This document shows, piece by piece, positions 5,684 to 54,347 of a stretch of 64,000 nt of DNA (within the stretch, counting starts at the first letter, position 1; each line of letters starts with the position of its first letter). The stretch is from the NCBI GenBank assembly GCA_964106915.2, contig OZ066923.1. One strand, given 5' to 3'. The stretch is from Podarcis gaigeae. Lineage: Eukaryota. Position numbers and translations under genes: made by a program. The notes under the pieces are model-generated. The model did no database searches, had not been told where the DNA came from, and saw nothing but the letters and a program-made list of their open reading frames with translations.

Positions 5684-5924
5684 AAAAAAAAAAAAATCCT
5701 TCCAGTAGCACCTTAAAGACCAACTAAGTCAGTTCTTGGTATGAGCTTTCGTGTGCATGCACATGTCTTCAGATACACTGAAGATACATTGTTGTATCTG
5801 AAGAAGTGTGCATGCACACGAAAGCTCATACCAAGAACTGACTTAGTTGGTCTTTAAGGTGCTACTGGAAGGAATTTTTTTTGTTTTGACTATGGCAGAC
5901 CAACACGGCTACCTATCTGTAACT
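5684..5924 (+). mobile_element. Short non-autonomous Penelope-like element with fold-back (inverted pLTR) structure
   Basis: About 90-bp inverted arms (about 5685-5777 and 5793-5883), terminus gactatggcagaccaacacggctacctatctgtaact, 11-bp direct repeat gtcccattaca at 5673-5683 and 5926-5936; related copy at about 55245-55444. Confidence 0.75.
5794..5831 (+). ncRNA. Minimal type I hammerhead ribozyme motif inside the Penelope-like element
   Basis: Stem I gtat(5794-97)/atac(5828-31); core CTGAAGA(5798-5804) plus extra A; stem II gtgtg-catg-cacac; GAAA(5820-23); palindromic AGCT in place of stem III; UC cleavage site after C5827. Confidence 0.7.
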
Positions 5925-9059: not shown

Positions 9060-10600
9060 CACTGAAATACTTTTTGGGGGAACAAGAGTTAGCGAGGCAA
9101 ACTCCCCCTCTGTCCCTTTCTACCCCTTAGCTCAAGAAAGGCAGGCCTGTGCCCCCCACCCTGGCCACGGACCCCCAAGTCCAAGCAGGGGGCTGCCAGG
9201 TGCTCCTTGGGGGAGGGGATGGCTGCAAACTTCCCATCCGACAAAAAGGAAAGTTTTTGCAGCGCTAGGGCTTCGGGGAGGGGGCGTCTGGAGGAGGGGG
9301 TCCACGGGATGGGGGGCAAGGGTCCCCCTAAAGACCCCCCACCCTTGGGGGAGTCACTCCTCCCCCCTTCCCGGCCAGGTCTGAGCTGAGCCTCGCCTGG
9401 CTCGGGGCTCCCTGTGTTAGTTGGGGTCTGCTCCCGGGGCCCCTGCGCGGCTCTCGGGGCGCTCAGAGGGCCGGGACGGGGGTCCCCCGGTGGCCCAGGG
9501 GTGCCCCTTGGTCCTCGCCTTTCCCCCTGCCGGGGCTCCCCTCGGCTGCTCGGCTATGGGGGCGCAAAGGGGAAATGTCGCCGCGCCCCACTCGCACCCA
9601 GCGCCGTTTGGGGCGCCCTGAGGAGGCGCGGGACGGCGGGAGAGCGAGCCGGCGGCGGGGCCCAAGAGCTCAAGGACCGGAGCAGCCGGCGGCCGCGGTG
9701 CGGGGCCCAGGAGGCGCCGGGGGACGCGGGAAAAAGCCGCTTTAGGCGGCGGAAGAAACACAGATGTCAGCGGCGCGGCGCCATTCGGGGCCTGAACAGG
9801 CAGCCAGCAGCCCTGTCCTCACCGCGGTCCGCGCCTGAGCGCTAAATACCCGGATGCGCCGGCTGCTGCCTAGAGAGCCAGACGCAGAGCGGGAGGCACA
9901 GGCAGCGGCGGCGGCGGAGGAAGGAGGTGTCCAGTGGCGCCCCGGAGAGAGAAGCGGGGAAAGAGGGGGGCGAGCAGGGCCCGGGCCTCTGGACAGAGCC
10001 ACGCCAGCGAGGGCTGACCGTGGCCGTTTGCCCGCGGAAGAAGCTGGTCAGGTGCACAGCAGAGGCCTGAGCCGGGAGCTCCTTAAGTTTCCGTGGGGGG
10101 CATTCGCCGGGACGGCTGCCCAGACCACACCCCGCCAGCAGGAGCCTGAAGGGGGGCGACAGCCACACTCGCGCGTGGTGTTGTTTTAAGCCACGAGGAG
10201 ACTCTTTGAGGGGGGTGAAAAGTGTTACTCCCCTCATCAACAAGGGAGGAATCCCACGTGCTGTTCAAGAGCCACCCGTGGCAGAGGCGAAGAGCCAGTT
10301 TTCCTGAAGGGGAACTTCCAAAGCGAGGATGACCGAGAACTCGTCCACGGCACCTGCTGCCAAGCCCAAGCGGGCCAAGGCAGCCAAGAAGTCGACGGAC
10401 CACCCCAAGTACTCGGACATGATAGTGGCCGCCATCCAAGCCGAAAAGAGCCGAGCTGGCTCCTCACGCCAGTCCATCCAGAAATACATTAAGAGCCACT
10501 ACAAAGTGGGGGAGAACGCCGACTCCCAGATCAAGTTGTCCATCAAGAGGTTGGTGACGACAGGTGTTCTCAAGCAGACAAAAGGCGTCGGTGCCTCGGG
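9060..10600. promoter_or_regulatory. CpG island over the H1-0 promoter and 5' end
   Basis: Visibly high GC and dense CpG compared with the CpG-poor flanks; limits estimated by eye. Confidence 0.8.
9413..9848 (+). promoter_or_regulatory. H1-0: H1-0 promoter: TG box/upstream element, H1 (AC) box, H4 site II-like box, TATA-like box
   Basis: TGTGTTAG 9413-9420; AAACACA 9756-9762; TCACCGCGGTCC 9819-9830 (TCANNNNGGTCC); TAAATA 9843-9848; no ATG between about 9873 and the start codon at 10329. Confidence 0.75.
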
Positions 10601-10907
10601 GTCCTTCCGCCTGGCCAAGGGGGATGAGCCCAAGAAAGCGCCCGTGAAGAAGGCCAAGAAGGAAGTCAAGAAGGCCGCAACACCCAAGAAAGCAGCCAAG
10701 CCCAAGAAGGCAGCTGCCAAGTCGCCGGCCAAGAAGCCCAAACCTGCGCCCAAAAAAGCCAAAAAGAAGCCAGCGCCTGCTCCAAAGAAAGCCAAGAAGC
10801 CAAAGACTGTCAAGGCTAAGCCAGTGAAGGCGTCAAAGCCTAAAAAGGCAAAAGCGTCGAAACCCAAAGCAAAGTCCAGTGCAAAGAAATCTGCCAAGAA
10901 AAAGTGA
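10329..10907 (+). CDS. H1-0: Linker histone H1.0 (replication-independent), 192 aa, intronless
   Basis: [97 protein letters not shown] is the H1.0 globular domain; K/A/P-rich tail; located between TRIOBP and GCAT. Confidence 0.98.
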
Positions 10908-25304: not shown

Positions 25305-25481
25305 TAAGTTAGATATCCCTTGTATTGGGAAAGAAAAATGCCACAGGACTCTTGTGGGCATTTTTAAAGAGTCTGTGGAGTAGCCTATTATTTTAGGGAA
25401 GTATGAAACATCAGTTGTTAAGTGATGTATAGTAAGCAGGTGCTTGCTGTAACTATTCTCTCTGCCTTCTGGTACCTACAG

Positions 25482-25628
25482 GCTCTACTGACCCCTGAAG
25501 ATGCAATACTTTCAGATGAATTGAATCATGCCTCTATCATTGATGGGATCCGGCTGTGTAAAGCCAACAAATATCGCTACAAACACATGGACATGCAGGA
25601 CCTGGAAGCCAAGTTGCAGGATGCCCAA
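25482..25628 (+). CDS. GCAT: GCAT exon 4
   Basis: ctacag|GCT...CAA|gtaagt; [49 protein letters not shown] (class II aminotransferase NHASIIDG motif). Confidence 0.96.
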
Positions 25629-25764
25629 GTAAGTTGGTGCTGTGGATCCAAAGCAAAGTCAGATTGCTGCTTTTCCAAGTCTCCACCTCCCCATGAGCAA
25701 TTTTTCTTAGGTTCTTGCTTACTTGGTCTCTACTGACCACATCCCTGCTTGCTCTCCTACGCAG

Positions 25765-25919
25765 AAATACCGTTTGAGGATGGTGGCTACAGATGGTGCT
25801 TTCTCCATGGATGGTGACATTGCTCCCTTGCAGGAAATCTGTAGGCTGTCTCAGAAATACAAAGCCATTGTTTTTGTTGATGAATGTCACGCCACTGGAT
25901 TTCTTGGGCCCAACGGACG
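25765..25919 (+). CDS. GCAT: GCAT exon 5
   Basis: acgcag|AAA...CG|gtaaaa; [52 protein letters not shown]. Confidence 0.96.
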
Positions 25920-27233
25920 GTAAAAAAAATCAAATTATTCTCTTTTGTCGCATTCTTTGTTGCTGTCGTTTTTAGCAAAGAAAAATTATCGCCAGTGATT
26001 TCTAACTATATAATAAAATTGTAAGGATGTTGCCAAGGTGCAATTTGCTGCAGCCATGTGAGCTGCAGCAAGGCAGCGAATAGCATGTGGGCAGCCCAGG
26101 CAGGCAGGTGAACGAGCAGGTGGACATGGCAAACCACAGAGGAACACCAGGACAGCATACTGATGCTGCTATTTTGGCCTCAGCAGGGTCAGAGACCGAG
26201 GAGGAGGGAAATGATCACAGAGCCAGATGGTTGCTGGAGAGTTGCCCCAGCCTGTCCTGTCTCTTGCTCTGTAGCTTACCTGTGCTGGGGTTTGAGTGAC
26301 CTGTAAGGGTGGGTTTGGCAAGGCTGGCCAAGTGTAAAGGGAGGGGGGTTGGTCAAGCATAGGGAGTGGGGAGGGAGGTTGGCAAACGAAGTGAGCAGGG
26401 GTAGCAGCCCTGAGAATAATTAGCCAGGATTAATTTTGTGCTGCTTTTTAGCCCCCAAAGTGGCCCACAAGTGAAAATACAGTATCAAACACACTATATA
26501 AAACCCAGTCTTGCATTATAAGATGATAGTGACAATGATAATAATGACTTAAAATAGCAGAATATAAAGCAGACTCTGGGGCGAGAACAGCAGTTCGGTC
26601 ATCATAAAAAGACCAATGGGATGGTTGAAGAAGTGTGATATCTTTTATGCCCTAGCTAAGTTAGCTCATAGCGGTAAAATAGGAAGCTTAATAAACCACA
26701 CTGTACTTTTTTATGGCTTTTATGGAGCCCCCATTAACTGGGCTATGTTGTGGACCTCCTTGTAATCTTGGGATGTAAGGGCTGTATATAAATTTGATAA
26801 ATAATATTAATGGAAAGAGGGCAAACAATCAGGAAGGAGATTGCTTTGTCTTCAGTTTGAACCCGAGATCGTGGTTTGTTGTTCTGTAATGAACCACAGT
26901 CTGTAAGCAAACAACAAACCATGGTTCAATCCTGGCTAGCAGTTTGGGCTTCTTAGAAGGGAAACAAGCCAGCTGTGGAGTCTGTTCCATTAGAGGGAAT
27001 GGGGCACTGTCTCACCAACCTGCCTTACTATTTAGGTAGGTTAGGCTGAGAGCTGGTGACTGGCCTACATTTATATTCATAGCTGTTTCCCAGACCATGC
27101 GCATTTCCAGTTGCTGGGGATGATGGGAGTTGTAGTCCAGCAGCACCTGGAGGAGAAAGCTTCCCCAGCTCTGGAACAGACAAATGGGAGAGTTCTGAAG
27201 CCTAAGCTAATAACAGTTATTTTCTCCTTGCAG

Positions 27234-27316
27234 GGGCACTGACGAACTCTTGGGAGTGATGGACCAAGTCACTATAATCAACTCCACACTTGGGAAAGCG
27301 CTTGGGGGAGCAGCAG
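27234..27316 (+). CDS. GCAT: GCAT exon 6 (contains the PLP-binding lysine)
   Basis: ttgcag|G...GCA G|gtgcag; GTDELLGVMDQVTIINSTLGKALGGAA. Confidence 0.95.
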
Positions 27317-27934
27317 GTGCAGTTGCCAACTAGCAGTACCCTAATTAGAAGTGTAGGGGAGAAAAATACATATTTTTTTGTATTAATAACTTCTGCCCTG
27401 CTTGTCTCAGAACAGCTGACATCTTCTTCACCACCACCATCCATTTCCCAGAGCTCCCCCTGTTCATTATTCTTCCTCTCACCTCTCTTTTACAGAGACG
27501 ATTTGAGAGGCAGGTTGGATATGTCATCTTTGGGCCAAAGCTAGAGGGGTTAGACACAAGGAACATCCTTGAATATGGGGGCAGGGAAAGGGAATAGAGT
27601 CAAGAGAAACCACTGAGTTGGAGGAAGCCGTTTCAAGTAAAAATTGGAGAGCAGTAAAGTCCCCAGCCCCCAATTCTGCCTTGACTTTGGCAGCACCTGA
27701 TACCTTAAAGTGCAGATTGGGAATCTCAGGCATTGGGGCAGAATGTGGCCCTCCAGGCTTCTCTGCCTGGCCCCTGGAACTCTTCAGAGGCAATGCCCCT
27801 TGTCTGGCCAACCCCCTTCTCCATAGACCACAGCCCTTACTGTCTCTGCTCTGTGCTCAAATGCTTTTGCCTGGCTGGAATGCATCCTTGAACTGTGATA
27901 ATATATTTCACTTGCTTGGATGGAGAAGAGAGAG

Positions 27935-27936
<2 letters not shown>

Positions 27937-27973
<37 letters not shown>
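27937..27973. repeat. (GT)n microsatellite
   Basis: Pure GT run. Confidence 0.95.
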
Positions 27974-27974
<1 letters not shown>

Positions 27975-28382
27975 TTGCAATGCAGCCTGCTGTGTAAAGG
28001 TAAAAGTGCATCCTTGGCTCTGCCCACTTTTGTCCCTCTCCCTGCCCCTGCCTTAAAGGAAGAGTGGTTCAGTTCTGTGCATCTGCCATTGACAAAATCC
28101 ATTTTACAATCTAGAAGGGATTGCTGTAGAGCTGGTGCAAGGATCTCTTGCTGAATGACAGCTCCCATCACCCCCAGCAAGCATGGCCGCAGCAGTGATG
28201 ATGGAAGTTGTAGTCCAGCAACATCTGGAGGGTCAAAGGTTTCCCACACCTCCATTGAGTAGAGCAGATGAGCACAACAAATGAGCGTCTCCCTCCGCCC
28301 CCCGTGAAGAGCACATTCATCTATGTCATCTATGGTGGCCCATTGGGGCCTTGAACTAACTTTGTCTTTCTTCTCTTTGCAG

Positions 28383-28554
28383 GTGGCTACACAACCGGCC
28401 CCAAAGCGCTCATTGACCTTCTGCGCCAACGTTCGCGCCCTTACCTCTTTTCCAATAGTTTGCCTCCTGCCGTGGTGGGCTGTGCCTCCAAGGCTCTGGA
28501 TCTCCTCATGGAGAGCAATGCCATTGCACAGTCCATGGCTGCCAAGACCACACG
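28383..28554 (+). CDS. GCAT: GCAT exon 7
   Basis: ttgcag|GT...CG|gtaagg; GYTTGPKALIDLLRQRSRPYLFSNSLPPAVVGCASKALDLLMESNAIAQSMAAKTT. Confidence 0.95.
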
Positions 28555-29024
28555 GTAAGGGAGCCTGTCATTTATCCAGAGCATTTATACCCCACCTTTT
28601 GTTCAAATTGTCCTCAAGATGGTTTACAACCCACTCCATTTTCCTTCCTGGTTTTCCACTGTCTTTGGCCACTGAACATGCTGAACCCTCATTGGGCTGT
28701 TTTGGGGGGAGTTTGCTCAGCTAGTCCCGTTCCCACCGAAAGTACTATTTGTACTTTTGTACATCTTTTGGTTCCTCCAAATTACTGTCGTCTCCCTTTC
28801 GTTTGTCACAGGTCACATTTTGACTTACAGCTGTCGGCACTCCACACACCATTGCTTTATTAGAGGGTGTGATGTTTTCTGCTGTCAGAACAGTTTCTGT
28901 GTCAGAATGGAAGTCAAATAGTACACAGTCCCTTCCGCAGACGTAAATGGGAGAGGGAGGGAGTGCTCCGTAGAGGGGACAGGCAAAGTAGGTCCCACGC
29001 TGAAGGTGTTCCTCTTCCTTGCAG

Positions 29025-29146
29025 TTTCCGAAGCAAGATGGCGGCAGCTGGATTCACCATTTCAGGGAATGACCACCCTATTTGCCCTGTGATGTTGGGC
29101 GATGCCCGGCTGGCGTCCTTGATGGCTGATGACATGCTGAAGAGAG
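29025..29146 (+). CDS. GCAT: GCAT exon 8
   Basis: ttgcag|T...AGA G|gtaacc; FRSKMAAAGFTISGNDHPICPVMLGDARLASLMADDMLKR. Confidence 0.95.
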
Positions 29147-29594
29147 GTAACCAATGTGGGACAGGGGAGCTTCGCGTAACTTATGATATCTTTGGGTGTT
29201 ACTGCCTGAAAAGCCCTGGGATGGTTTTAAGAACTTTTGAGTTGAGAGGAAAAACCTAGAGACTCTTCTTTGCTTTGGAAGCTGTCACAATCGGTGTGGC
29301 TCTCCTTGTAACCCCATTTCATGTGAAGCCAAGCAGGTAACTCAGGGAAGCAGGTAAGGGGAACTCCCAGGCAGCCTCTGAGGAGAAGGAGGAAAAGCTG
29401 ATGAGTTAATTCTTGCTTTAAGACATCGAGTGCATCTTTATATATCAAGCATGAATTGTGTTTTGCATTTCTGAGCTAATAAAATTGGCTGGGCTGTTTT
29501 TTGTTTTGCTTTATATTGTGCATTATGCTATACTAACTAGTGTTCTCAGCACTTTTTGTAAAATAGGTATTTAATAATATAGACCCTATTCCTG

Positions 29595-29842
29595 GTTGTT
29601 GTTGTTGTTGTTTAGTCGTTTAGTCATGTCTGACTCTTTGTGACCCCATGGACCAGAGCACGCCATGCACTCCTGTCTTCCACTGCCTCCTGCAGTTTGG
29701 TCAAACTCATGTTTGTAGCTTCGAGAACACTGTCCAACCATCTCATCCTCTGTCGTCCCCTTCTCCTTGTGCCCTCCATCTTTCCCAACATCAGGGCCTT
29801 TTCCAGGGAGTCTTCTCTTCTCATGAGGTGGCCAAAGTATTG
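29595..29842 (-). mobile_element. BovB (RTE) LINE, 5'-truncated 3' end
   Basis: Minus-strand peptide QYFGHLMRREDSLEKALMLGKMEGTRRRGRQRMRWLDSV; (CAA)n tail. Confidence 0.9.
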
Positions 29843-31202
29843 ATTAAGACATGGCAATTCTGTCTTCAGATCCCTAACCTCCATGCTGTGTACCAGTTGC
29901 TTTACCATAGAGACAGCATAGGAATCTTATTTAAACCTCCTTTGTTTTTCTCCTCCCTGTCTTGACTTTAAGTGTTCCTGCATTTCTCTTAATGATTTGA
30001 TAGTGGCATTATCCCCGATCCCCTATACCAGTGGTTATGAACCATAATCTGCCTGCCATTATGTGTTGCTGCTCCTGCTACTTTCATTTCAGAGACTGAG
30101 AATGGGCCACATGTAGAGACTAGACCTCATGCTGCCAACCCCTGTTGCTTCTTGCTCAGTTTTCCTTTTTCTTCCTGTTCTGAGGGGCTACTCCAGAACA
30201 GGCAGAAATTCAGTACACACACTTGTGCCTCCACCCTGGGCGGAAGCTGTGATGATCGGCAAATCATTTGTCGAACTTTTTGCTTGATGTGCAGCTGTTA
30301 AGTAGAGGAGGGGCATCAGGGACAGCATAAAGCTGCAGCATTGAATCAAATCTGTTTGATCCAATTTTTAAAAAAAGTTTAATCTGCCCTCTGAAAATAA
30401 GCATATAAAATTACTATCATTTTTAATACAAGTAATTGCAATTTAAAAAAAACTCCAGTTGGCCAATCTTAAGAGGCATTTCTGCTTTTCTCTCACTTAA
30501 GTTCCTTAAATGATGTTTGCTACACATCCAAAAACATTAAGGATAGGAACAGCCTGCTGGCATCCTGTTCTCACAGTGACCAACCAGTGCTCTCCACTCC
30601 TGCAGATTCCTGCTCCTTGATTCAGTGCTACTTTCCCCCTCTTCAACCCAGATTTGCTCAGTCCTTCCAGAGCTGCCTTTCTGCTTTGGTTTCAATCCCA
30701 CCTTAATAGCAGCACAAGTCCATCTGACCTGTCACAGAGCCACTCCTGCATCTTCCAACAGGAATTTCCCTGGCAGCTCTGTAGAGGGCAGCATTGTCTC
30801 CAGAAAAACCATCCTGGAAGTTTGACACTGGTAAACGCACACTCCTTGTTGCAATCCAGAGCTGGCCCTAAGACAATACTTTGCTGTACAACCTCATTCA
30901 AGAGGTGCGTGATCTGCCACACTGGAAGAAATCTTGGGCAGTACTAAACATCAGTCTGCAACCCAAGAAGCGGTTGGCTAGTTCAGAGCAGTATAGCATT
31001 CCCACCTTGCCAGCTGCCTTTTTGGTCCTCCTGTGTTGTATGACAGCTTGGGTGATAGTCTGCAGTGTGAAAGGGTAGTGAAGGCAGCCAAACAAAGTCC
31101 TCTTGCTTCTTAACTTTCCCTCTGCCACCATGTGGATATCTTTATTTTCTCTTGACTCTGGGTGCGTCCAACACAGTAAAACATCAAATATTAAAAACTT
31201 CC

Positions 31203-31242
<40 letters not shown>
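31203..31242. repeat. (TAA)n microsatellite
   Basis: Pure AAT run. Confidence 0.95.
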
Positions 31243-31643
31243 GGGTTGGGGACCCTGGTGCTGTTTCTGCTTCCTGCAAGTTTTATCCCGAGTGATGCTT
31301 AACAATCCACATCAAATGTTGTAGATTCTCTAGGTCAGCCTGGTAGCGAAGTTCATGAAATTGTGGAAGTCAGTCAAACGTGGCATGCCCCCATATGAGT
31401 TACAGGGATGGATGCTGATACTTTAATGCATTGTTTTCTTAAATTGTGTAATATGTTCTTGTGATATATTTGTTTATGCATTTTTGTGTGCTGCCTTATG
31501 AAAGTTTTATTTATGAATCTCTTTGTTTATTATTTATTTTACTCATTTATTAAAGAAACAAAATAAGGTCTTGCTTATGCAGTTGATCTGCTGCCTCTGC
31601 TACACTCATCTCTCTCTCCCTCCCTCTCTTTCTCACCTGTCAG

Positions 31644-31795
31644 GCATCTACGTCATTGGATTCAGCTACCCCGTGGTGCCCAAGGGAAAAGCTCGCATCC
31701 GGGTGCAGATCTCGGCTGTTCACAGTGACGAGGATATTGATCGGTGTGTGGAGGCCTTTGTGGAAGTTGGCCGTAAGCATGGAGCCTTGCCTTGA
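31644..31795 (+). CDS. GCAT: GCAT exon 9 (terminal)
   Basis: tgtcag|GC...TGA; [49 protein letters not shown]. Confidence 0.96.
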
Positions 31796-31992
31796 ATGGC
31801 TGAAGATCGTGAGCTGTAGGATGCCTTTCAAAACCTGAAACCTGCAGGTGGACCGTGCTGCTTTTCAGAGAGGTGGTAGTGGCTTTGAAAAGAGGTGTTG
31901 CTCACATCACTTTTGGTGCTGTGTTGCCAGACTCTAGAACCTGTGCATTCTACCTCTGCTTAAGGAGGACCGCAATGTGCCTGGAGGAGAGT

Positions 31993-37400: not shown

Positions 37401-38006
37401 ATAAGTCTCGTGGAAAACAGGAGGTGTAGAAAACCCACCTTACTAAATTATGTTCAAGCAAAACTGCAGCCCTATAAACCCAACAACATAGCAATTGCTC
37501 TGGCTCCAGATAAAAATTAAATGAGGCTAAGTATCCCAAACACTTATTAAAACCATTTATTTCTCCACACAAAAAAAATCAGGTTTCACCAACAGTGATG
37601 ATGAGCACAGTTCCTTGACTTTCCAAAGCACATTGCCTCCCAGGACGTCAATGGTGAAATGCTTTCCATTTCTGCCGTCAGTTTGTCATTACACCTGTCA
37701 GTCCACAAAAGATGTTGGCCGTCTCTGCTTCCCACGAGATATCACTGCCTTGACTTCCTTTCCTGAAAGACGGCAGCAATACCCCAAAGTCTAGTTCTCT
37801 TTGCTTGCTGTAAACATCTCGCTGAGACGCAGTCTTTAATATCTTCACTGCTTTCTGGCGTCTCTTGCCACCGTTACCCTCTGGTTCAGAGACCCATTGA
37901 GACTATGGGTGACCACCAGCTCTGCAGATTTCAACTCATCAGCAAACGGCAGCAAACTCCTTGAGAAATCCGTAGCTGGCAATGTGAAACCCACATCGCC
38001 TTGTCA

Positions 38007-38791
38007 TCAGCAGGAACACTTGCACGTAGCCACCACAGGGTAAGGGACTTGCCTCCAAGCGCATTGCTGTGAGGACTTCCCTGGTCTCAGCACGTGGTCT
38101 TTCCTTGCCCAGCAGTGCCACGCTAGGGGTTTGATCTGGGTGACTTGGGCAGGCTGGCAAGTCATGCCTGGAGGCCAAGAACACCCAGTGTGAGTCTGGT
38201 TGCAGTCCGTATGGTGTACCAGCGTGGCCAGAAGATGGGTCCCATGTCCACCCAGGAAGAGGTCAGGCAGCAGGTAGCACTATCCACAAGCCACTGATGG
38301 AAGTGGTGGAGGAGGGTTTTGCTCAGGCCGAGGGAGATCCCGCCCTCAACAGGCAGCAGCTAGGAAAGATCTAAACCCTTTGCCTGCTGCAGAAGCTTCT
38401 TCCTAAAGCATGCTGTACGCTCACCCAAGTCCTGGCTGAGGACACCCACTTCTTTTAGGCTTGTGTTGAGACCTTGGGGGTCCTTGAGAGACACCCAGAA
38501 GGGGTTGTAGGAAGAGCCCAGCAGTTTCATCAGCCGTGTGGCATGCAGGAGCTTGGGCTTGGGCAAATAGCGGTTGCAGTCATCCAGGGAGAGGGAGAGG
38601 CTGTAGGGCCTTGCCTGAGCACCCAGCTCGCTGCAGATGAAATGGACGTCGGGGCTGTGCTGCTTGCCGATCCTATCAGGAAGCAGGGGAGCCTCTCCAA
38701 GGGGAAAGTCTCTTTCTTGAGAGAAGGAAATTGCTCCGGTTCTCTCACACCAGGGCTCCAGGAGACAGACGAACCAAGCTTTGACACCCAT
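38007..38791 (-). pseudogene. NOG4: Noggin-family gene (Noggin4-like), single exon, disrupted by a premature TAG (38362-38360) and a 1-bp deletion (between 38219 and 38218)
   Basis: ATG 38791; RPYSLSLSLDD..PKPKLLHATRLMKLLGSSYNPFWVS..FRKKLLQQAKGLDLS*LLPVEGG..QWLVDSATCCLTSSWVDMGPIFWPRW / (V)HHTDCNQTHTGCSWPPGMTCQPAQVTQIKPLAWHCW..QQCAWRQVPYPVVATCKCSC*. Nine-cysteine noggin C-terminus; span of 785 nt is one base short of 262 codons. Noggin family confident; subtype and pseudogene status less so. Confidence 0.85.
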
Positions 38792-39639
38792 GCCTGCCGC
38801 AGAGCCTTCAAGACTTGTGTGCCTCTCAGCTGCAGCAAACAAAGTATGCGGGATGCGTCTCTCAACCCACCCCCCTTTTAAATCAGCAGATCCTTTGGGC
38901 TAAGAACCTCCTAGCTTCCCTTTCTCCCTGCTACAGACTTTGATATCAGATTGCACTGTTGCTCCCAGACACAAACAATTATAAAGATGAAAAGAAACCA
39001 AGAAGTGGGCTTTTAAAATATGTTTTTACCATGAGCAGAGGCCAATAATGAATAACTAGAATGAGTGTCTATCTGAGCCCCATGCTTTTCTATGTTATGC
39101 TATTGTCTACCTTAGGCCTTCTCCAGATCATAGAATTGGAGAGTTGGAAGGGAACCAAATGGTCTATTCCAACTGCCTGCAATGCAGGAATCACAGCTAA
39201 AGAATCCCTGATGGATGGCCATCCAACCTTTGTTTAAAATCTCAAACTTAGCATCTTATTAAGAGTTCATCCTGGTTTGCCTGCACAAAGCTTACATGGA
39301 GGTTAGATTATGTCCAGTTCTTCTGGAGCATTTGTTCTGATTTGCTTGTGGGGAGATTATGTGGCAGTGAGCATTCATCCTGCAGCCATCCTGGCTTGCT
39401 TATGTAGTCAATGATTTGTTCATCACACAGTGCAATTCTCTCACTTCCCTAACTGCAAAAAAAAATGTTTAACAGTGGGGTTGAAGCCAGGGGCATTGTT
39501 TGGGGGTCGTCCAAACCAGAGCAGCACATGTGTCTGTTTCCCACTTCCAGCTTCCAGCTCGCATACATCACAGCTCTGGCCATTGTTGTTCTGCCTAAAA
39601 GCCAGGGTGGCTGGGATAGCACAATCATATCATTTGCCT

Positions 39640-51515: not shown

Positions 51516-51903
51516 TTAATAAAATGAGACTGAAAGCAATCTTGTGTGTGTGGTACAATTTTATGATGGTATGATGGTGTCTTTATGAGTGCGTGTTTCT
51601 GTATGCGCGCATGCACACGAGAGAAAAATGGAATTATGTGTATGCTTGCTGTGTGTGTGCTGGTGAAGAAGGTAGAGCTGGAGGAGTGAATATCCTGAGC
51701 AGGGATAAATTGGGATACAAGAGACGATGGAAGACAAGGTCCTGGAGAGCTTTGAAGGGACAAGAAGCGTGTGCAGGATCTGGGAGCGGACAGGAAACTA
51801 GTGCAGGGATCTGAGGCAGGGCTTGTCCCATGATTTCCTACTTTTACCTCTGTTCATTTCATCTTTTCCTATTTCTCCAGGCCCCTTTCTCTCAGATGGG
51901 GAG

Positions 51904-52253
51904 ATGCCAGACAGCTGGAACACATCTTCAGACAGCGTAGAAGCACGAACTGCAGGCATTGTTGTGCCGGTGGTCTTCTCCCTCATCTTCTTCGTGGGCA
52001 CAGTAGGGAACGGCTTGGTGCTGGCTGTGCTGCTGCGCAATGGACAGGTGAAATACAACACCACCAACCTGTTCATCCTTAACCTGGCGGTGGCGGACCT
52101 GTGCTTCATTGTCTTCTGTGTCCCCTTCCAGGCCACCATCTACACGCTGGATGGGTGGCTCTTTGGTGCCTTTGCCTGCAAGGCAGTGCACTTTCTCATC
52201 TACCTCACCATGTATGCCAGCAGTTTCACCCTGGCAGCTGTCTCTGTGGACAG
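51904..52253 (+). CDS. GALR3: Galanin receptor type 3 (galr2b-like) coding exon 1, TM1-TM3
   Basis: [77 protein letters not shown]; intron splits the DRY arginine (AG|gtaaat), as in GALR2/3. Confidence 0.92.
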
Positions 52254-52968
52254 GTAAATACAAGCACTCCTCCTCTCTGGCATCTCTCCCTCTCTGTCCT
52301 CCAAACCAATATATTGCTTGATCAATGGAAGGATCCTACTTCTTCCATAGGAAGGAGTAGAGGACAAAGGACCTTGCTCCTTTGAATACCTTTCAGGGAT
52401 GGGAGAGAAATTTGATCCACTTTGCATTTAAAGGTGAACCTACCAAATTTGCGCTTGGGAACAGAAACACAGCTCTGTTTCCAAAGTCACGCTTTTCTGA
52501 ATTTTGCAGTCAGTTTTCCAGCGTACAGAGATGCATATACTAAAGTAAAGTGTGTATTAAAATGCACACATCACCAAAAATAGCATTGTATTAGGGAAGA
52601 TTGGTTATAAGAAAAGATTGCATGGAAAAATATTTATAGCAGGAGAAATTTTCACTAAAATGCTGATGAATTTCCATGATGATTTAAAATAAATGAATGA
52701 ATCTTAAATTGCTGCAAACTGTGGAGAGCTGAATTTGATACCAGAAAAATGAAAGATCCTTCCAAACCTGCTCCACATACATTTTCTCAATACCCTTCTC
52801 AAGTTTTCTCCATTCCTTTGTCCTTAACAACCTAATCCCACTTATCACCTCTTGCTGTTTCTGCATAGGGGGCACCTTAATAAATTTGTGCCTGAACATG
52901 CAGTCTCCCAGTTCACCTGGATTCTTGGCATTCCTCAGGCATATGTGTTTCTGCACTCAGTTTTCTGT

Positions 52969-53014
52969 ATTGAAGGAGGAAGGAAACACATTGAAGGAGG
53001 AAGGAAACACATTG
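52969..53014. repeat. 21-bp tandem duplication in the GALR3 intron
   Basis: attgaaggaggaaggaaacac twice. Confidence 0.85.
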
Positions 53015-53476
53015 TACACATATGAAAAGCTTTGTGAATTATGGAAGCTCTTCCTAGATCTGCATAAGTTGTTGTGGGCCCCAATTTGGAGTTTTCGTTG
53101 GCAGTTTAAGCTTAAGGAGTTTTGGGAAGACCCTAGAAAATAACTCTGTTGGCTTGTCACCAAGGTCACATCCTCACCAGGCATTTAAAGCACATAGCCT
53201 CCCTCAAAGAATCATGGGAACCATAGTTTACCCCCTCACAGAGCTACCATTCCCAACACACTCAATAAACAACACTTCCCAGGATTCTTTGGGGGAAGTC
53301 ATGTGCTTTTTCAACATATGGTATGGCTGTGACCCAAGATAATATGTGGAAATGAGAATAAGGAGGTCAGGCACTGAAGCAACCAGAGGAAAGGGAAGGT
53401 GATGTTTTTTGGGCTTCTCAAAATTTATTGTGTTCAAGAAACTAACCCCTTTACCCCACACCCACTCTGCTTCCAG

Positions 53477-54347
53477 GTATCTGGCTATCCGTTACCCCCT
53501 GAAATCCCGGGATCTCCGGACCTCTCGCAATGCAGCTCTTGCCATTGTAATGATCTGGACGCTGTCGCTGCTTTTTGCAGGGCCGTATCTCAGCTACTAC
53601 CAAATAGTCCACTACCAGGAGGTGCCCATCTGTGTCCCTATTTGGGAGGACCAGCGCCGAAAGATCTTGGACATCCTCACCTTCGTATTTGGCTACGTCC
53701 TCCCAGTCTTTGTTGTCAGCCTGGCTTACGCTAGGACCATTAAGTTCTTGTGGACTGCTGTAGATCCCATTGAGAGGATCTCGGAGTCCCGTAAAGCCAA
53801 GCGCAGGGTCACCAAGATGATCATAGCAGTGGCCGTCCTCTTCTGCCTGTGCTGGCTGCCCCACCACCTAGTGATCTTGTGCTTCTGGTTTGGCTATTTC
53901 CCCTTTAATCGGGCCACCTACGCCTGCCGCTTGGCTTCCCATTGCCTGTCCTACGCCAATTCTTGCCTCAACCCAATTGTCTACGCTCTCATCTCCAAGC
54001 ACTTCCGCAAGAGATTCAAGCAGGTCTTCACCTGCCTCCTCATCCAGGACAAGAACAAGAAGAGGCAAGCAGGCAACAAGGTCCACGTAGCCAATGTCAA
54101 CAATGGTTTAGCCAACCATACGGCAGGCTTCTGTGGAGGGAACACAGAGGTAACCCAACTCCATGAGGAAAATATCCGATGCTACCAGGGCCTGTTGCTG
54201 AAAGAAACTGAAGGGGGGGTGCCTGAGGCATGGTCTCATCAGTTAGAAGACACAGCCATCTCGGATCAGAGAGAGCTAATGAATGAAGAAGGTTCTGGGG
54301 CAACTGACAACAATCAACTGGCTGTGACAACACACGAGGGACTGTAA
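53477..54347 (+). CDS. GALR3: GALR3 coding exon 2, TM4-TM7 and C-terminal tail; 406 aa in total
   Basis: ttccag|G TAT; CWLPHHLVILCFWFG..ATYACRLASHCLSYANSCLNPIVY. ATYACRLASHCL is GALR3-type and the position downstream of GCAT is the GALR3 locus. Confidence 0.92.

Follow-up and report, generated by a model that had tools for sequence, protein, structure and literature searches.

A stretch of 64,000 nucleotides from Podarcis gaigeae (hereafter the window) carries the coding relic of a single-exon noggin-like gene, and the question it raises is whether wall lizards have truly lost Noggin4 and, if so, how long ago. The initial annotation had read this locus as a Noggin4 gene recently pseudogenised in this lizard lineage. 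On the minus strand the broken frame runs from an ATG at 38791 through an in-frame TAG at 38362-38360 and a shift after the Trp codon at 38221-38219 to a TGA at 38009-38007, and both the sequence and the Pfam matches agree with the frame as originally described, including its cysteine-rich end. The three pieces of the relic (Table 1) were searched separately, and all of them matched the Pfam Noggin profile (PF05806) in order, at profile positions 43-80, 115-150 and 155-211, with E-values of 0.047, 1.2e-5 and 1.4e-13 (two of the three above the cut-off); in scripts the breaks were entered as X or as missing data. The intact Lacerta agilis CDS aligns with the window over its full length at 94.5% DNA identity (43 of 785 bases differ), and among the database matches of the 5' piece the intact 263-residue "noggin-like" protein of the same species ranks first (87%), followed by a 201-residue Podarcis muralis model (92% over 63%). 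The relic is colinear with an uninterrupted CDS in seven squamates and Xenopus, indicating a single coding exon. It retains the nine-cysteine pattern of the family (codons 176, 199, 206, 214, 229, 246, 259, 261 and 263); the nine C-terminal cysteines noted at the outset are thus all present, but only eight of them lie past the frameshift, that of codon 176 preceding it. The TATA-like and AATAAA motifs noted on the same strand are likewise there, and AATAAA lies 417-460 nt past the Noggin4 stop in five other squamates.

Table 1. Coordinates of the Noggin4 relic, its lesions and its neighbours in the window
Feature	Position	Strand	Evidence and remarks
GCAT exons seen (3' part of gene); downstream neighbour, tail to tail	25470..31800	+	Exon matches to relatives' GCAT-type (Aminotran_1_2) gene
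AATAAA polyadenylation-like signal, about 445 nt past stop	37561-37556	-	Same offset in Lacerta and Zootoca; putative function
Single-exon coding relic of Noggin4, a pseudogene (263 codons in relatives with an open frame)	38007..38791	-	Pfam Noggin in three pieces; full-length Lacerta agilis CDS alignment; trees
Cystine-knot half of Noggin domain with the ancestral stop, out of frame at present	38007..38216	-	Pfam E 1.4e-13
1-bp deletion in G run of conserved FWPRW motif (codon 193); oldest shared lesion	38219..38221	-	CDS alignment and four-species contigs
Premature stop TAG, from AAG (Lys146)	38360..38362	-	CDS alignment; both individuals of window species; species B heterozygous; lacking in E
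Open piece at the 5' end (143 codons) with signal peptide and N-terminal region; maximum coding capacity of window allele	38363..38791	-	ORF and Pfam
6-bp in-frame deletion, shortens hydrophobic core of signal peptide	38758..38764	-	Shared with species B and E, not D
TATA-like motif TTTAAAAG, 91 nt before ATG	38882-38875	-	Same distance in Lacerta and Zootoca; absent in more distant lizards; putative function
Two-exon galanin receptor gene (GALR3/galr2b position); upstream neighbour	51886..54347	+	7tm_1; best solved-structure match galanin receptor type 2

Phylogenetic analysis, with X placed at each break of the window, consistently unites the relic with Noggin4. A quick tree of 50 rows put it beside Lacerta and Zootoca (support 100), in a clade holding the named Xenopus noggin4 proteins (99), with a protein branch length of 0.086 for the window versus 0.017 and 0.015 for Lacerta and Zootoca, respectively. 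A careful tree of 17 rows confirmed this, placing the window inside a clade of Noggin4 and lamprey NogginD with support of 100/100. AU tests rejected its placement with Noggin1 (p 1.9e-104) and with Noggin2 (p 1.5e-38), so that this tree and these tests rule out an identity with either paralogue. Gene order points the same way: gcat and galr2b are the diagnostic neighbours of noggin4 (PMC10869764), and the relic sits between gcat and a galanin receptor gene. The relatives' GCAT exons match the window at 25.5-31.8 kb, and a GCAT-type gene is the next one downstream of Noggin4 in Lacerta, Zootoca, Rhineura, Tiliqua, Sceloporus, Varanus and Gekko, as it is of noggin4.S in Xenopus. The upstream neighbour is predicted to be a galanin receptor from its sequence, its GALR3/galr2b label coming from its position. 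Hence, the Noggin4 identity initially proposed is borne out by trees, AU tests and gene order, and the suggested checks against Pfam and a Noggin1/2/4 tree agree with it. Elsewhere in the window, a single-exon gene for linker histone H1-0, a usual neighbour of GCAT, occupies positions 10329-10907, and positions 5701-5924 match, in both orientations, part of a GCAT intron from Gekko (L007:17714-17846).

The "noggin-like" proteins of Lacerta agilis (XP_033018601.1) and Zootoca vivipara (XP_034983712.1) are one-to-one orthologues at 94-94.5% DNA identity, with colinear flanks and the same TATA-like and polyA-like sites, but unlike the window they have open 263-codon frames under purifying selection (omega 0.32). 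Xenopus laevis noggin4.S (NP_001089147.1) and lamprey NogginD fall in the same clade and share the single exon, the nine-cysteine pattern and a FWPRWVRHTDC-type motif, and the Xenopus gene occupies the same site beside gcat, whereas in wall lizards the gene is broken. The N-terminal region of the lizard Noggin4 orthologues is unlike that of Noggin1/2. Intact versions of Noggin4 are present in an amphisbaenian, skinks, a cordylid, anguimorphs, iguanians, geckos, snakes, the tuatara, turtles, crocodilians and birds. No intact Podarcis Noggin4 was found among the annotated proteins of a database in which Podarcis Noggin2 is present.

The lesions themselves are real. The loss of a G from a run of Gs is a typical long-read error, and this would speak for an intact gene obscured by faulty assembly; however, both the stop and the 1-bp deletion are kept in a second individual of the window species from another study, in which one contig of equal length spans the CDS with 4 SNPs and no gaps. 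As both lesions recur in an independent sample, neither can be an assembly error, and the deletion is additionally found in three other species; an intact gene disguised by such errors has next to no chance of being the explanation and was rejected. Besides these two lesions, both counted at the outset, there is a third that had been overlooked, the 6-bp in-frame deletion. This deletion, near 38761 in the hydrophobic core of the signal peptide, accounts for the weak signal peptide noticed earlier, the best 9-residue hydropathy being 2.03 in the window versus 2.84 in Lacerta (2.22 in Varanus). The codon behind the TAG had been assumed to be CAG. We reject this origin, since Lacerta, Zootoca, Rhineura and two relatives all have AAG (Lys) at this site, the ancestral state. 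The frameshift at codon 193 cuts off eight of the nine noggin cysteines, the shifted frame stopping 19 codons later, and the window has gained four extra unpaired cysteines at codons 55, 74, 130 and 177. No second Noggin4 locus was evident in the contigs aligned to 37950-38900. As in a unitary pseudogene, the lesions are genuine and lie at the ancestral locus.

The distribution of these lesions was traced in contigs from four public runs aligned on 37950-38900, which represent four species with one or two individuals each and can drop rare alleles. The species are designated A (that of the window), B, D (P. muralis-like) and E, with B and E probably also belonging to Podarcis. The frameshift near 38220 is common to all four, with no insertion there in any of them: the contig of E spans the stretch and that of B covers 37950-38290, both without a gap, and D shows a single gap over 37950-38260, namely another loss of 1 bp, at 38173. 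An intact frame in Lacerta agilis and Zootoca vivipara is thus set against a frameshift in four of the four wall-lizard species checked, which argues that the loss of Noggin4 is old rather than a recent accident in a single species. The Lys codon at the stop site is kept in E and in one haplotype of D, while B has one contig with the stop and one with Lys (depth 7 and 6.5), no other base in the second contig being compatible with the letter counts; D has an additional frameshift at 38748 and keeps the 6 bp missing from A, B and E. The points of truncation consequently vary by species (codon 146, about codon 212 and, in D, near codon 17). As the frameshift occurs in all four species, and the stop and other lesions only in some, the frameshift probably came first and the later lesions piecemeal, with the stop being younger.

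A second contig of D (38261-38368, depth 4.1) carries none of the first contig's seven alleles, including the Lys codon; either the stop lies on a very different short haplotype in this species, or there is under-reporting. Over 38748-38900 (153 bp), species E does not differ from the window and has its 6-bp deletion too, but further 3' it is 4% from the window and D-like (chance 0.002-0.02). The haplotype of E in this interval is possibly recombinant or introgressed.

The alleles of D equal those of the P. muralis UniRef model A0A670IPI0 (201 aa) at 12 of 12 comparable codons, including the derived N159 and N173, suggesting that D is P. muralis and that the window comes from another Podarcis. 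This model derives from the same locus (92% identity over the shared part), but the protein entry is without the N-terminus and the segment from WPRW to CSW. The deletion of D at 38173 explains why the model leaves the shifted frame and resumes that of the cysteines. The "Noggin" of A0A670IPI0 is therefore best read as a gene model patched around the frameshifts at 38748, 38220 and 38173, and the entry can be flagged as a patched pseudogene.

Selective constraint was assessed with branch models in a purpose-written codon-model script, broken codons being treated as missing data. Omega is 0.325 for the background of other squamates and 0.32 for Lacerta and Zootoca combined, which departs from 1 with p 0.004, whereas on the crown branches of A and E it is 0.95, statistically indistinguishable from 1 (p 0.90; profile range about 0.45-2.2), the value near 1 characteristic of a unitary pseudogene. 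The Podarcis lineage differs from the background with p 0.003 (0.003-0.006 under two other topologies). The branch dN/dS check initially proposed thus reveals a loss of constraint in wall lizards (0.95) and its retention elsewhere (about 0.33). On the stem, omega is 0.65 (0.54-0.87 by tree), a value compatible with both 0.33 and 1, and dating of the loss from it was abandoned on account of too few changes. Lineage-specific changes in the CDS amount to 4.1% in the window versus 1.4% and 1.8% in Lacerta and Zootoca (Fisher p 0.026), while in the flanks they are about 3% in all three alike; 13 of the 31 lineage-specific CDS changes in the window are CpG transitions.

These rates also bear on the age of the loss. 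Species A and E are 4.2% apart in the Noggin4 CDS, as compared to 3.4% between Lacerta and Zootoca, and the codon-model branch lengths are 0.066 each for A and E and 0.06-0.10 for the stem. Judged from the sequences, the branch lengths of A and E would fit a deep split within Podarcis, the crown of which is placed at 18.6 Mya, with splits of the major clades at about 16.7-9.8 Mya (PMC8114931). Fixation of the loss may accordingly predate the Podarcis radiation or belong to its early phase, with an age of at least about 10-17 My, and the loss probably extends across the genus. The description as "recently pseudogenised" does not survive, given that the frameshift occurs in four species up to 4.2% apart in the CDS and that evolution has been neutral on both branches since their split.

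Given that Podarcis genomes are mosaics (PMC8114931), it is conceivable that the pseudogene is real but that the loss is limited to part of the genus, or that the frameshift allele was introgressed and postdates the splits between the species. Signs of a mosaic are seen at this locus too, as E matches the window over 38748-38900 and is D-like further 3', and B has two unlike haplotypes. Nevertheless, the frameshift is found on haplotypes about 4% different around it, with neutral rates on both branches, so that the allele is as old as this divergence, and we consider a partial or introgressed loss unlikely. A still smaller likelihood attaches to the locus being at work today as a truncated secreted peptide, a non-coding transcript or a regulatory element. 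Single-exon transcripts may escape junction-based decay, and the motifs resembling a promoter and a polyA signal persist; lineage-specific change is also lower in the promoter and 5' region (2.5% versus 3-6.5% nearby), although this figure represents 4 changes and is not significant. The species-specific truncation points, eroded signal peptide, gain of free cysteines and omega of about 1 all argue against such a function, making it very improbable.

Taken together, the locus is in all likelihood a unitary pseudogene of Noggin4, that is, a gene lost at its ancestral site and subject to neutral decay thereafter. In Xenopus, Noggin4 is secreted and diffuses freely; it binds Wnt8 and not BMP4, and its knock-down reduces anterior head structures (PMC4789793). 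By analogy with the Xenopus protein (PMC4789793), the product of the ancestral lizard gene would have been a secreted protein of the cystine-knot type, able to bind Wnt8 and to dampen the canonical Wnt pathway in the head. Between the divergence from Lacerta and Zootoca and the separation of the four species, the gene would have escaped constraint, and the loss of 1 bp at codon 193, which took the cystine knot with it, would have become fixed. Later neutral decay would have brought the signal-peptide deletion, the stop at codon 146 and many CpG transitions, with two further frameshifts in the P. muralis-like species, so that the window allele could specify at most a 143-residue stub lacking the knot. 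Since the fixation of the frameshift there has probably been no folded or useful product, and other Wnt antagonists presumably cover the role of Noggin4 in wall lizards. That the loss was fixed in the common ancestor of all Podarcis and altered head or neural-crest development in a way important for the genus is a very improbable proposition; were it true, wall lizards would represent a Noggin4 knockout made by nature, with the gene intact in their sister genera.

That individual lineages lose this paralogue is already known, and in this respect the present case is only moderately surprising. Noggin4 has been lost in some elasmobranchs, and noggin1 pseudogenes occur in the mako and white sharks (PMC10869764); Noggin2/4 were lost in eutherians and noggin4 in zebrafish (PMC3296468). 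These losses likewise affect single lineages in a conserved neighbourhood, but in wall lizards the relic is nearly complete, the succession of its lesions can be worked out and the gene survives in close relatives. With Lacerta, Zootoca and other squamates intact, the loss is independent of those in mammals and sharks, as originally surmised. Wall lizards furnish a datable addition to the independent losses of Noggin4, demonstrate that the gene is dispensable in an amniote even though its knock-down reduces anterior head structures in the frog (PMC4789793), and form with Lacerta or Zootoca a close pair for studying Noggin4 in amniote embryos. The loss is apparently unreported: no account of Noggin4 loss in Podarcis or lizards, or of its retention in mammals, was found in the literature searched, most subscription papers lying outside the search.

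The description of Noggin4 as a paralogue of non-mammalian vertebrates agrees with published accounts (PMC4789793, PMC3296468) but fails for two rodents with intact open reading frames of the Noggin4 clade. In the ground squirrel Callospermophilus lateralis (XP_076711547.2), a 299-residue noggin frame lies between a 7tm_1 gene and a GCAT-type gene, the latter followed by a linker histone in the same order as in the window. This protein and that of the jerboa Jaculus jaculus (XP_004650651.2) have all nine cysteines and group within the Noggin4 clade in the 17-row tree. Judging by these sequences, the published absence of Noggin4 in mammals is too strong a statement. The intact rodent copies, in conjunction with the wall-lizard loss, suggest repeated losses of Noggin4 rather than a single one at the root of the mammals. 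A third close relative has a changed C-terminus without the last three cysteines.

Several squamate gene models depart from the usual form. In the limb-reduced skink Lerista edwardsae (L010:4001-4810), the protein model diverges at the same motif as the wall-lizard relic, but a parallel loss was rejected, as the DNA has an intact 269-codon frame; a false splice is annotated where a GT falls within the WV codons of this conserved motif. The Noggin4 models of Phrynocephalus forsythii and Sphaerodactylus townsendi are without the C-terminal cysteines and are either annotation artefacts like that of Lerista or further squamate losses. In Hemicordylus capensis (L006:10001-19710), the annotated Noggin4 has its first exon 9 kb upstream and is placed within the span of the receptor gene model, which is probably a matter of annotation.
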